Shown here piece by piece: positions 8,163 to 48,181 of a stretch of DNA of 64,000 bases. The position numbers and the translations under genes are program-made. Positions within the stretch are counted from its first letter, which is position 1; every line of letters starts with the position of its first letter. Source of the stretch: Trichosphaerium sp. ATCC 40318 (lineage: Eukaryota; Protista; Tubulinea); NCBI GenBank assembly GCA_038496445.1, contig JALMLS010000461.1, positions 62,001 through 126,000 on the forward strand. The letters run 5' to 3'. The notes under the pieces were generated by a model. That model made no database searches, was not told the DNA's origin, and saw nothing but the letters and a program-made list of their open reading frames with translations.

Positions 8163-9110
8163 TTATACAATGAAATCTACCCTTACTACATGTGCACCGG
8201 TTGCCTGGACACCCTCTTTTGAAGTTGAGGAGCAACCATACAGGGTTATAGTGTGTACACCTGCCAATGCTTTCAATCCTTCATCTGTCACGTTTGTCTC
8301 TTGTAGATCAATCTCATGTACACCAGCCAATGCTTTAATGCCTTCATCTGTCACTTTTGTGTATGATACATCTATAGTATGTACACCTGCCAATGCTTTA
8401 ATGCCTTCATCTGTCACTTTTGTATATGATACATCTATAGTATGTACACCTGCCAATGCTTTAATGCCTTCATCTGTCACTTTTGTGTATGATACATCTA
8501 TAGTATGTACACCTGCCAATGCTTTAATGCCTTCATCTGTCACTTTTGTATATGATACATCTATAGTATGTACACCTGCCAATGCTTTAATGCCTTCATC
8601 TGTCACGTTTGTATATGATACATCTATAGTATGTACACCTGCCAATGCTTTAATGCCTTCATCTGTCACTTTTGTGTATGATACATCTATAGTATGTACA
8701 CCTGCCAATGCTTTCAATCCTTCATCTGTTACGTTTGTATCTTCTAGATTAATCTCATGTACGCCAGACAATGCTTTAATGCCTTCATCTGTTATTGATT
8801 CACAAAAAAACAAATTGATTGTATGTACTCCCGCTAGTAACCTCAACTGATTGTCGTTTACATCTCTATACCCATTGAACAGAATGGCTGTATTCTGCAA
8901 TAAAGGACTGCCAGAAAGCATCATCACCTCGGTACTGCTTTTAACAATAATTTGACCATATCCGACGTGGTTATGGACAATATCCCGCAAGAAGTGGCAA
9001 GTTTGTGCGGAACGAAGTGTAAAAGTGCCTTGTTTGAGAATATGAACTATTAGTTCAACGGGGAGCGCGACAAGGTCACTAATGTTCTGGATAACCTCTT
9101 CTTCATTCAT
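8163..9110 (-). CDS. Intronless F-box-like + leucine-rich repeat protein, copy 1 (315 aa)
   Basis: N-terminal LVALPVELIVHIL (F-box-like). Nine 21-22 aa LRRs xIxLxxTxVTDEGIKALAGVH, six of them near-identical TIDVSY units, then a capping repeat. Confidence 0.9.
   Translation of the reverse strand: MNEEEVIQNISDLVALPVELIVHILKQGTFTLRSAQTCHFLRDIVHNHVGYGQIIVKSSTEVMMLSGSPLLQNTAILFNGYRDVNDNQLRLLAGVHTINLFFCESITDEGIKALSGVHEINLEDTNVTDEGLKALAGVHTIDVSYTKVTDEGIKALAGVHTIDVSYTNVTDEGIKALAGVHTIDVSYTKVTDEGIKALAGVHTIDVSYTKVTDEGIKALAGVHTIDVSYTKVTDEGIKALAGVHTIDVSYTKVTDEGIKALAGVHEIDLQETNVTDEGLKALAGVHTITLYGCSSTSKEGVQATGAHVVRVDFIV
8240..8830. repeat. 63-bp coding tandem repeat (LRR units)
   Basis: Units such as tgtacacctgccaatgctttaatgccttcatctgtcacttttgtrtatgatacatctatagta recur with 63-nt period. 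Confidence 0.95.
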
Positions 9111-29546: not shown

Positions 29547-30632
29547 ATGAATGAAGAAGAGGTTATCCAGAACATTAGTGACCTTGTCGCGCTCCCCGTT
29601 GAACTAATAGTTCATATTCTCAAACAAGGCACTTTTACACTTCGTTCCGCACAAACTTGCCACTTCTTGCGGGATATTGTCCATAACCACGTCGGATATG
29701 GTCAAATTATTGTTAAAAGCAGTACCGAGGTGATGATGCTTTCTGGCAGTCCTTTATTGCAGAATACAGCCATTCTGTTCAATGGGTATAGAGATGTAAA
29801 CGACAATCAGTTGAGGTTACTAGCGGGAGTACATACAATCAATTTGTCCAGTTGTGAATCAATAACAGACGAAGGCATCAAGGCATTGGCTGGAGTCTAT
29901 GACATTGGATTATCACAGACAAACGTAACAGACAAAGGCATCAAAGCATTGGCAGGTGTACACAAAATAAATTTAGATTTTTGTGAATCAATAACAGACG
30001 AAGGCATCAAAGCATTGGCAGGTGTATACAATATAGATTTAGATTTTTGTGAATCAATTACAGATGAAGGCATTAAAGCATTGGCTGGTGTACATGAGAT
30101 TGGATTATCAAGGACAAAAGTAACAGACGAAGGTTTGAAGGCGTTAGTAGGTGTACACTCTATCTTTTTATATGATTGTCTATCGATAACAGACGAAGGC
30201 ATCATCAAGGCGTTGGTTGGTGTACACAATATTGATCTATCGGGAACAAAGGTAACAGATGAAGGCATTAAAGCATTGGCTGGTGTACATGAGATTAATC
30301 TAGAAGATACAAACGTAACAGATGAAGGCATTAAAGCATTGGCTGGTGTACACACTATAACTGTATCATACACAAAGGTAACAGATGAAGGCATTAAAGC
30401 ATTGGCTGGTGTACATGAGATTAATCTAGAAGATACAAACGTAACAGATGAAGGCATTAAAGCATTGGCTGGTGTACACACTATAGATGTATCAGGAACA
30501 AAAGTAACAGATGAAGGATTGAAAGCATTGGCAGGTGTACACACTATAACCCTGTATGGTTGCTCCTCAACTTCAAAAGAGGGTGTCCAGGCGACCGGTG
30601 CACAGGTAGTAAGGGGCCCAGACTTATCATAG
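29547..30632 (+). CDS. Intronless F-box-like + leucine-rich repeat protein, copy 2 (361 aa)
   Basis: First ~100 aa identical to copy 1. Eleven heterogeneous LRR units plus the same capping repeat. Confidence 0.9.
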   Translation: MNEEEVIQNISDLVALPVELIVHILKQGTFTLRSAQTCHFLRDIVHNHVGYGQIIVKSSTEVMMLSGSPLLQNTAILFNGYRDVNDNQLRLLAGVHTINLSSCESITDEGIKALAGVYDIGLSQTNVTDKGIKALAGVHKINLDFCESITDEGIKALAGVYNIDLDFCESITDEGIKALAGVHEIGLSRTKVTDEGLKALVGVHSIFLYDCLSITDEGIIKALVGVHNIDLSGTKVTDEGIKALAGVHEINLEDTNVTDEGIKALAGVHTITVSYTKVTDEGIKALAGVHEINLEDTNVTDEGIKALAGVHTIDVSGTKVTDEGLKALAGVHTITLYGCSSTSKEGVQATGAQVVRGPDLS

Positions 30633-32095: not shown

Positions 32096-32477
32096 TGCGA
32101 TAGTTGTCTAAAAAACGAACGAAACGAGTCTCAATTTCTTGTAATTTTCTCAAAACGTTTTGCAAAAAGACTACTTTTTTGACCGATATCTATAAAGGTA
32201 TGATCGAAAAACCACTACGAAAGTAATTATCATTCGAAAAAAAAAACCCCTAAAAATGGAACCTTCTGTAGTTTTGAAGTTAAATTTTTTATTTTCCTTC
32301 TAATACTTCACATACAACCTACACAAGCATTATTAGAAATCCCACAACTTTTTTTTTTTGTAACGAACAAAGGTATAAATTTACAACAAAAACATTCTTC
32401 TCTCGAGATGCACAACCATAAGTTGTTTGTGTCCTGTCTTACCGTATGTCAATGTACCAACTAACAATCTATATTTC

Positions 32478-32550
32478 GCGGGTTCGAATCCCGCCTCCCC
32501 TGCAAAAGGGGAGTGTGCCGAGTGGTTAAGGCGTTAAAATGCTAATTTAA
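32478..32550 (+). tRNA. Circularly permuted tRNA-Ser(GCT)-like element (3' half precedes 5' half)
   Basis: T-arm GCGGG-TTCGAAT-CCCGC (32478-32494); acceptor 3' strand CTCCCCT + G (32495-32502); CAAA linker; acceptor 5' strand AGGGGAG (32507-32513); D-arm GCC-GAGTGGTTAA-GGC; anticodon arm TTAAA-ATGCTAA-TTTAA (GCT at 32541-32543). Confidence 0.6.
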
Positions 32551-32752
32551 TAATTCTTCGTGGTGCCGGTACGTTGGCTACAACTCAAGGCCGCCTGAAA
32601 TGTCAGGCGGTAAGGGCTCACGACGCTATCATCTCTTATTTTTTTCATAAAATCGGAAGCAGTGTTACAAAGTTACAGCTTGACTTTTGCTGAATAAAGT
32701 CACCGCTTTTTTTTTTACGGCTTTGTTCCGCCTTTAGTCATTCTCCCTACCA

Positions 32753-47560: not shown

Positions 47561-48181
47561 ATGGATACAAACGCTGATAATAGCTGGGAGCTGGACGATC
47601 CGACAGAAACTGCACTGAACAATAAATATACGTTTTACTTGCCATCACACGAAGGGAAAGCGCTTTTAAAACCAGGAGACAACGTCAAGCTTATTTTCAA
47701 CGATTTGACTCCAGATGGCGGAAGAGAACGCATGTGGGTTACAATAACAGAGCGAGACGGTGATAACTTTACTGGTACTCTTGCAAACCACCCTTACGGC
47801 TTTTCAAGCTTAGATTTTGGACATATCATACATTTCGAAGAAAAACATATTATTTGTATGGGGATAGACGATCCAAACGACGGGGATGACTTGATACAAA
47901 AATATCGGAAAAGGTGCAATGTTTCGCGTCAATTACTCCTGGAAGGTAGTAAGATTATGTGTTTGTATAGAGAGGAGCCAGAGGATAGGCCTGATGAGAT
48001 GTACCCTGACAGTGGGTGGAGGTTAAGGCATACAAGTGATGATAATGTTGAATGCTCGTTTGAAGTGGCGTCTTTGGGACTAATGTTAAACAGGAATGAC
48101 AAGTTCTTAAGTTTTCTTGACGAACCAGTGGGTACAAAGTTGTGTTGGGATGAAAAGTCACAAGAGTTTAAACACGTGTAA
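47561..48181 (+). CDS. Intronless DUF2314/DUF2185-like protein (bacterial-type, candidate HGT)
   Basis: ERMWVTITERDGDNFTGTLANHP (YegJ/DUF2314-like) plus YREEP...DSGWR (DUF2185-like). Confidence 0.75.
   Translation: MDTNADNSWELDDPTETALNNKYTFYLPSHEGKALLKPGDNVKLIFNDLTPDGGRERMWVTITERDGDNFTGTLANHPYGFSSLDFGHIIHFEEKHIICMGIDDPNDGDDLIQKYRKRCNVSRQLLLEGSKIMCLYREEPEDRPDEMYPDSGWRLRHTSDDNVECSFEVASLGLMLNRNDKFLSFLDEPVGTKLCWDEKSQEFKHV

Follow-up and report, generated by a model that had tools for sequence, protein, structure and literature searches.

Our results suggest, tentatively, that a tRNA-Ser(GCU) is encoded complete but in circularly permuted order in the protist Trichosphaerium sp. ATCC 40318. The element, which we call the unit (32413-32645, + strand), lies in a stretch of 64,000 nucleotides (nt) of contig JALMLS010000461.1 (assembly GCA_038496445.1, positions 62,001 to 126,000 of the forward strand); this whole stretch is referred to as the window, and positions are counted from its first letter. 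As we read it, the unit would be a self-contained small-RNA gene whose break lies in the region of the variable arm. The permuted tRNA body occupies 32478-32550 and runs in the order T-arm, 3' acceptor strand, discriminator base G73, 4-nt linker, 5' acceptor strand, Ser-type D-arm and GCT anticodon arm (Table 1). The initial annotation of this DNA had reported reversed halves with a T-arm, a 7-base-pair (bp) acceptor stem, a Ser-type D-arm and a GCT anticodon arm, together with a G at the discriminator position. Direct reading and indexing of the window matched this description base for base, all the parts being at their places and G73 (32502) being followed by CAAA.

The break falls between the end of the anticodon stem (32550) and the start of the T-stem (32478), which is the variable region (positions 44-48). 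T33, A37 and G73 are all kept, and the D-arm and the T-loop are identical to those of the eukaryotic Ser-type genes that we recovered from metagenome loci. Since the anticodon arm and the Ser features that can be read in the DNA (G73 and the Ser-type D-arm) are intact, we favour a working tRNA-Ser(GCU) as the product. Upstream of the unit, the TATA-like box is probably its promoter, by analogy with the permuted tRNA genes of Cyanidioschyzon merolae.

In its native order the unit escapes the standard tools: ARAGORN found no tRNA in the 64-kb window, and Rfam gave no match at the gathering score. The two halves were then swapped, with 32507-x placed before y-32502 in 1248 combinations of the junctions x and y. 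ARAGORN called tRNA-Ser(gct) in 373 of the 1248, across a wide range of variable-arm lengths, and the same rearrangement applied to 2949 random places of the window gave no call. The swapped unit is drawn with an acceptor stem of 7 bp and with anticodon and T stems of 5 bp each; note that for the D-arm ARAGORN shows a 4-bp stem containing a T:G pair in place of the GCC/GGC arm with its 3-nt connector. Moreover, when both strands of the window were scanned for a T-arm with a loop-closed 7-bp acceptor stem, the unit was the sole match backed by a D-arm, the others being a few AT-rich chance hairpins that have none. Folding of the 234-nt stretch that holds the unit gave z = -5.2.

We compared four sequencing runs (X1 to X4) with the unit and its surroundings over 901 bases. 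All of them are assembled contigs, from which rare forms drop out, and depth and absence were read cautiously. X1 and X2 are two samples of one study, X3 is a sponge metatranscriptome and X4 is a small template-switch cDNA set. X1 and X2 hold one contig each, made of an Illumina adapter, 32413-32503, one extra C and an adapter starting AGATCGG; the word depth of this molecule is 239 and 90, respectively, and zero on the remaining DNA of the 901 bases. After the acceptor strand the genome reads G-C-A-A-A-A, and the molecule reads G32502-C32503-C and then A, which may belong to the tRNA (A76) or open the adapter. Thus, at least one C is non-templated, since the genome has G-C-A-A where X1 and X2 have G-C-C, and a strain difference is unlikely because the X3 and X4 contigs agree with the genome at this place. 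The record itself carries no RNA label; we infer that the X1 and X2 libraries derive from RNA because of the sharp adapter-flanked ends, the silent flanks and the added C. This molecule comprises the leader, the T-arm and the 3' acceptor strand with a C-C(A) end, a tail distinct from the CCACCA decay mark. Since it still bears the leader, the acceptor loop is opened and the end CCA-tailed with the leader in place. Its 5' end at 32413 places the transcript start at this position or just upstream.

Colinear, precursor-like contigs that span the linker were present in the other two runs (X3, 32473-32620; X4, 32446-32568). The X3 contig comes from a relative of about 96% identity, with 5 other letters and one gap. 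Its listed differences (C32567T, A32580G and a hairpin loop shorter by one A at 32598) are all in the trailer, and all fit the fold described below, as a new U-A pair, a change from A-U to G-U and a loop change. None of the 3 lies inside 32473-32560; two unlisted differences are near the contig ends. The presence of this colinear unit also points to a related protist in the marine sponge sample.

An origin of the unit as a junction within a head-to-tail tRNA array, an insert from an organelle, a dispersed repeat or an artefact of assembly is highly improbable, and we found no point that supports it. Other tRNAs are absent from the 64 kb, the unit is single copy in the window and the GC content is flat (36-38%) throughout. 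The flanks are unlike the missing halves: in local alignments, decayed partner halves of a recent tandem duplication were not found, 450-471 of 500 shuffles aligning as well as the flanks. Assembly error is opposed by the identical colinear order in independent contigs from three studies. The initial annotation had named an array junction, a missing transcript and the lack of a conserved homologue as objections to its own proposal; we found no tandem-array junction, evidence of a transcript is present and the relative of about 96% identity keeps the layout.

The leader and the trailer of the unit pair with each other. In a constrained fold, in which the four tRNA helices were fixed and the remainder folded free, the whole length of the leader pairs with the trailer into a long interrupted rod of about 35 bp, and the first and the last transcript nucleotides are thereby brought together. 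In energy, this pairing brings -13.1 kcal/mol, whereas shuffled leaders bring -3.5 +/- 2.1, and 0 of 300 shuffles reach it (z = -4.6). The 11-bp flank helix with two G-U pairs that the initial annotation had proposed is part of the rod, and the hairpin at 32591-32610, the T-run and the AAT-CTAT-ATT element that it had listed are all present. Its second flank pairing (32437-44 with 32608-15) is present as well, but the best fold prefers the hairpin. The rod exits the tRNA body between the anticodon stem and the T-stem, which is the place of the long variable arm in class II (Ser, Leu) tRNAs.

This geometry raises another possibility, which we consider unlikely: a working two-piece tRNA, whose halves are never joined, with the rod as an oversized variable arm and the nicked molecule itself being serylated and taking part in translation. 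The 3' piece with its CC(A) tail and intact leader is abundant, the rod exits at the one site of a class II tRNA body that can accommodate a long arm, every Ser identity feature that shows in the sequence is kept, and nicked tRNAs can keep their halves base-paired in cells (PMC10159003). However, at about 35 bp this interrupted rod, which also bears a side hairpin, exceeds every natural variable arm several-fold in length, and the 5' piece was not seen in the X1-X4 contigs. By the geometry of the ribosome, such a rod should not pass between the subunits, which also counts against a nicked molecule that translates.

We rather lean, without much confidence, towards a nicked molecule that is an intermediate of a working tRNA-Ser(GCU), the permuted gene being processed acceptor-first and the rod being later removed and the ends joined without a bulge-helix-bulge (BHB) motif. 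From what is known of the enzymes, the primary transcript would fold into the tRNA body, with the acceptor closed by CAAA and the leader and trailer zipped into the rod. RNase P would then cut before A32507, RNase Z or nibbling would trim to G32502, and the CCA-adding enzyme would tail the G73 end. The outcome would be a nicked tRNA in two pieces, kept together by the 7-bp acceptor stem and by the rod of about 35 bp. Finally, the rod would be removed and the ends joined in the variable arm by a non-BHB route, to yield a tRNA of about 85-87 nt that reads AGY codons. This order of steps, with the acceptor first, is the reverse of the algal pathway. In support of the permuted tRNA, the swap gives a cloverleaf where none of the 2949 controls did, and every stem is fully paired. 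The TATA box and T-run are laid out as in known permuted genes and the 4-nt intervening sequence falls in the known range of 1-74 nt; the CC(A)-ended molecules of X1 and X2 and the colinear contigs of X3 and X4 point in the same direction.

Several observations weigh against this pathway. An exhaustive scan of leader against trailer for a BHB motif (3-nt bulge, 4-bp helix, 3-nt bulge) gave only weak matches, with 2-bp flanking helices, at sites that yield no tRNA, in agreement with the initial annotation, which had seen no clear BHB motif. A leader of 65 nt and a trailer of 95 nt, paired end to end and with an extra hairpin, exceed the needs of a processing signal, and the sole possible variable arm of the joined product is a 3-bp A-U stem. 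The oddities that had been pointed out from the outset all hold; among them, the very short linker aside, both the extra nucleotide between positions 9 and 10 and A32 (unusual for tRNA-Ser) speak against a working product. Neither a back-joint nor a circular or joined tRNA is present in the contigs of the four runs, where rare forms drop out. No molecule starting at 32507, which would be the 5' piece, is present in the X1-X4 contigs; some records were filtered out, and modified bases may stop reverse transcription. Moreover, the X1/X2 contig is unbranched from the leader to the CCA end, so that X1 and X2 hold no equally abundant RNA with this 3' half and a different upstream part, within the limits set on this argument by the use of contigs alone, graph cleaning and reverse-transcription blocks on modified tRNA. 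Thus, the anatomy fits the permuted tRNA gene put forward in the initial annotation, and the cut of the acceptor 3' end at the discriminator and the C-C(A) tail add to its support, but the BHB motif is absent and a circular or joined product was not seen in the contigs.

The X4 contig has a further joint. It consists of the switch oligo and 32446-32568, joined straight to 32751 and continuing into an open reading frame (ORF) with MORN repeats (to 33000+). The joint lies 2 nt before the ATG of this ORF (32753) and skips 182 nt (32569-32750), with GT..AC ends and no shared letters. We rejected an ordinary spliceosomal intron, given these ends and the unused AG at 32736-37. The simplest account, as yet unproven, is a jump of the reverse transcriptase from the 5' end of the MORN mRNA (~32751) onto the small RNA; the alternative to it is an unconventional splice. 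If the jump is true, a trimmed small RNA (5' end 32446, 3' end 32567/68) with a closed acceptor loop exists. The ends of the X4 segment sit at opposite ends of the 11-bp helix and on opposite strands, which is the topology of cuts by the splicing endonuclease, yet the helix has 11 bp and not 4 bp. Joining of 32568 to 32446 as a maturation product was also rejected, as it would leave a 50-nt variable region, a 6-bp stem and connectors of 10 and 18 nt, which is not tRNA-like.

A further point against the pathway comes from a bacterial tRNA mimic, in which the same fragment also receives a CCA tail. The best Rfam match in the region is YrlA (RF02553; 22.1 bits, E = 0.057), a Y RNA of bacteria and phages. 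It shares with the unit the permuted body of T-arm, loop-closed acceptor and D-arm, and ends that pair in a long stem. Most YrlA members keep the acceptor closed, as opposed to the unit. In Mycobacterium smegmatis YrlA, RNase P opens the acceptor stem of 7 bp and CCA is added to the 3'-end fragment, the same species as that seen in X1 and X2. A CCA end fails for this reason to separate a pre-tRNA from a mimic. The main alternative, which we hold to be less likely, is that the unit is a lasting tRNA mimic, a eukaryotic counterpart of the YrlA-type Y RNAs. The nicked, CCA-tailed, rod-bearing two-piece RNA would then be a non-decoding end product, in which the rod and the hairpin may form a protein-binding platform (Ro60-like, La or other) and the tRNA body may recruit tRNA-binding factors. 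The long and significant rod, running from the first to the last transcript nucleotides, would fit such an RNA, as would the absence of the BHB motif and the fact that the leader-bearing species is the sole assembled form with a CCA end. It would also accommodate A32 and the additional U behind G9, which are odd in a tRNA that works.

In contrast, the Rfam score is far under the YrlA gathering score of 69. The unit keeps a perfect GCU anticodon arm (5-bp stem and 7-nt loop, with T33, GCT and A37) and its rod exits the variable region, whereas in YrlA the anticodon loop is absent and the terminal stem sits where the anticodon stem would be. The setting also differs, being eukaryotic, with a TATA box and a T-run. 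A literature search found no Y-like permuted mimic in eukaryotes. YrlA RNAs bind Ro60/Rsr by means of a conserved helix; among the ORFs scanned in the 64-kb window, none was TROVE-like (Ro60). The initial annotation had offered, as its second interpretation, a YrlA-like mimic with a capped acceptor; in the RNA detected the cap is opened and the score is 22 bits against 69, but the cutting and tailing of the M. smegmatis member speak in its favour. Taken together, it is possible, if not the outcome that we would choose, that the pieces are never joined and that the two-piece, CCA-ended, rod-clamped molecules are either working split tRNAs or the first eukaryotic YrlA-type mimics.

The same peculiarities could be those of a transcribed relic, a rearranged tRNA-derived sequence that the end-processing enzymes still recognise but that has no function, and whose CCA-tailed piece is a by-product headed for decay. 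The extra nucleotide in the 8-10 connector, A32, the absent BHB motif and the lack of a joined product in the contigs are all compatible with it. We nevertheless think it improbable: no stem is broken, the conserved tRNA positions that can be read in the sequence are all retained, a TATA box and a T-run belong to the unit itself, and the leader and trailer are complementary over their full length with the significance given above. In addition, the listed differences of the sponge sample are outside the tRNA body and compatible with the fold, the tail is C-C(A) rather than CCACCA, and the RNA is abundant in two samples. We keep the working tRNA-Ser(GCU), processed acceptor-first, as our tentative proposal.

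Table 1. Features of the unit and of its leader-trailer rod (positions in the window; x, pairs with).
Feature	Position	Strand	Basis or remark
T11 run	32349-59	+	Sequence; precedes the TATA-like box
TATA-like box, TATAAAT	32374..32380	+	Sequence; 33-39 nt upstream of the RNA 5' end at 32413
Leader, 65 nt, 5' strand of the leader-trailer rod	32413..32477	+	Adapter abuts 32413 in the X1/X2 contigs; pairing from the constrained fold
5' strand of the 11-bp terminal helix, GTCAATGTACC	32448..32458	+	Pairs with 32568-78, two G-U
Weak hairpin AAT-CTAT-ATT, alternative fold within the leader	32466-75	+	Sequence
T-arm with B box: stem GCGGG/CCCGC (32478-82/32490-94), loop TTCGAAT (32483-89)	32478..32494	+	
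3' acceptor strand CTCCCCT	32495-32501	+	Followed by discriminator G73 at 32502, site of 3' end formation
Intervening sequence CAAA, closes the acceptor stem in the primary transcript	32503..32506	+	Retained in the colinear X3/X4 contigs
5' acceptor strand AGGGGAG	32507..32513	+	7/7 Watson-Crick pairs with 32495-32501
Connector TGT	32514-16	+	One nucleotide above the usual two
Ser-type D-arm GCC-GAGTGGTTAA-GGC, A box	32517-32	+	G26 follows at 32533
Anticodon arm TTAAA-ATGCTAA-TTTAA: 5-bp A-T stem, 7-nt loop, GCT at 32541-43, A32, T33	32534..32550	+	
Trailer, 95 nt, 3' strand of the rod, ends in T7	32551..32645	+	X3 contig covers the trailer up to 32620
T7 run, RNA polymerase III-type stop	32639-45	+	Sequence; functional role predicted
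Rod helix	32460-63 x 32561-64		Constrained fold
Rod helix, 11 bp, two G-U	32448-58 x 32568-78		Constrained fold
Rod helix	32444-46 x 32579-81		Constrained fold
Rod helix	32436-40 x 32613-17		Constrained fold
Rod helix	32429-33 x 32622-26		Constrained fold
Rod helix	32424-25 x 32630-31		Constrained fold
Rod helix	32418-22 x 32635-39		Constrained fold
9-bp trailer hairpin	32590-32611		Constrained fold

The neighbours of the unit are an LRR gene on one side and the MORN-repeat ORF on the other. ORFs with LRR_6 repeats are at 29547-30632 (+) and 8163-9110 (-); a search with the former alone gave, as its nearest Atlas clusters, LRR/F-box families from giant viruses (Nucleocytoviricota), which would suit an amoeba-like host but is no proof of one. 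The ORF downstream of the unit has no exact protein on record, and its homologues are distant. Elsewhere in this eukaryote-like window, the ORF at 47561-48181 (+) matches Imm33, a bacterial-type immunity protein domain, and DUF2314.

In the papers searched, permuted tRNA genes are reported solely from a few algae, one nucleomorph and one archaeon, all with a BHB motif and all thought to mature via a circle. The unit has the same layout in a non-algal protist, with a break position that has not been described, without the cutting signal and with an acceptor end that is matured before any step at the break. If the pieces are joined, eukaryotes may have a second route for cutting and joining tRNA pieces. 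If they are never joined, the unit would give stable, nicked, rod-bearing tRNA look-alikes, with a layout so far confined to the Y-like RNAs of bacteria and phages. Since standard tRNA finders report nothing at the unit, the tRNA sets of such genomes would be undercounted.

An exact homologue of the unit was not found in the JGI metagenome contigs. A looser scan of metagenome and viral contigs, for a B box followed by a Ser-type A box 21-30 nt apart, recovered 35 metagenome and 6 viral loci. None of them qualifies as an orthologue; they comprise tandem tRNAs, permuted Ser units of the algal type and viral YrlA-like units that lack an anticodon arm. The connector is TG in every permuted unit recovered and in every normal Ser gene whose connector could be read, and the extra T of the unit is for this reason a real peculiarity. 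Five of the loci (L009:3011-3123, L021, L038, L024 and L036) are permuted and YrlA-like in layout: their ends pair, the anticodon arm is missing, and the T-arm, the 7-bp acceptor closed by a loop and the Ser-type D-arm are present. Among them, L009 and L024 lie within dense tRNA arrays according to Rfam and, being the two that were checked, stay below the gathering score of YrlA in Rfam; two others, L038 and L036, are viral contigs (IMG/VR). The metagenome locus L030:130-340, in minus-strand orientation, is built like the unit, its permuted tRNA body having a full anticodon arm and its ends forming a 13-bp terminal helix; C33 and GTT set it apart from the unit, and a terminator-like hairpin and a T7 run follow. 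Permuted Ser-type tRNA units are also present in the environmental contigs L011:840-960, L035:100-200, L006, L008, L015, L018 and L033. In L011, a Ser(GCT) unit is broken at 37/38 and has an 8-bp leader-trailer helix beside the break.

As occurs with the split tRNAs of Nanoarchaeum equitans and other archaea, the unit would yield two pieces held by complementary leader and trailer sequences beside the break; the archaeal pieces, however, come from separate genes and are joined in trans via a BHB motif (PMC3218864; PMC2237900). In the unit there is one colinear transcript, the pieces result from a cut in the acceptor loop and no BHB motif is present. The unit shares with mascRNA, released from MALAT1, the action of tRNA end-processing and CCA-adding enzymes on a tRNA-shaped, non-standard module; the anticodon arm of mascRNA is degenerate, and its order is not permuted. 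In nicked tRNAs, the source of the cut is damage in the anticodon loop and not the layout of a gene. Their cut halves can stay base-paired (PMC10159003).

Finally, the closest known layout is that of the permuted tRNA genes, of which 34 have been described, in one red alga, four prasinophyte green algae, the Bigelowiella nucleomorph and Thermofilum pendens (PMC3978253). Examples are those of Cyanidioschyzon merolae, Ostreococcus/Micromonas and the Bigelowiella natans nucleomorph (Soma 2007; Maruyama 2010; PMC3978253). A 2026 review mentions no lineage with permuted tRNAs outside the algae and archaea, and a literature search for permuted tRNAs in amoebae, Amoebozoa or protists found no report. 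These genes have a TATA-like box, a T-stretch and a BHB motif at the junction, which lies at 15/16, 20/21, 37/38, 50/51 or 59/60, and their intervening sequences are of 1-74 nt; the transcript is cut and joined to a circle, which is processed by RNase P and RNase Z before CCA is added (PMC3978253). Class II tRNAs (Ser, Leu) are over-represented among the algal permuted genes; the unit is also Ser, and Micromonas pusilla has a permuted Ser(GCT) and the B. natans nucleomorph Ser genes with 5-bp intervening sequences (PMC3978253). The unit has in common with the algal genes that the 3' half lies upstream of the 5' half in a single transcript, that a short intervening sequence closes the acceptor stem, that a TATA-like box lies upstream and a T-stretch downstream, and that CCA is not encoded and is added after transcription. 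It differs from them in its lack of a BHB motif and of circular or joined forms in the contigs, in its junction, which is in the variable region (44-48) and outside the described positions, and in its very long and fully paired leader and trailer. Moreover, its host is a non-algal protist, and it carries CCA on the leader-bearing piece, whereas the algae form the circle first.

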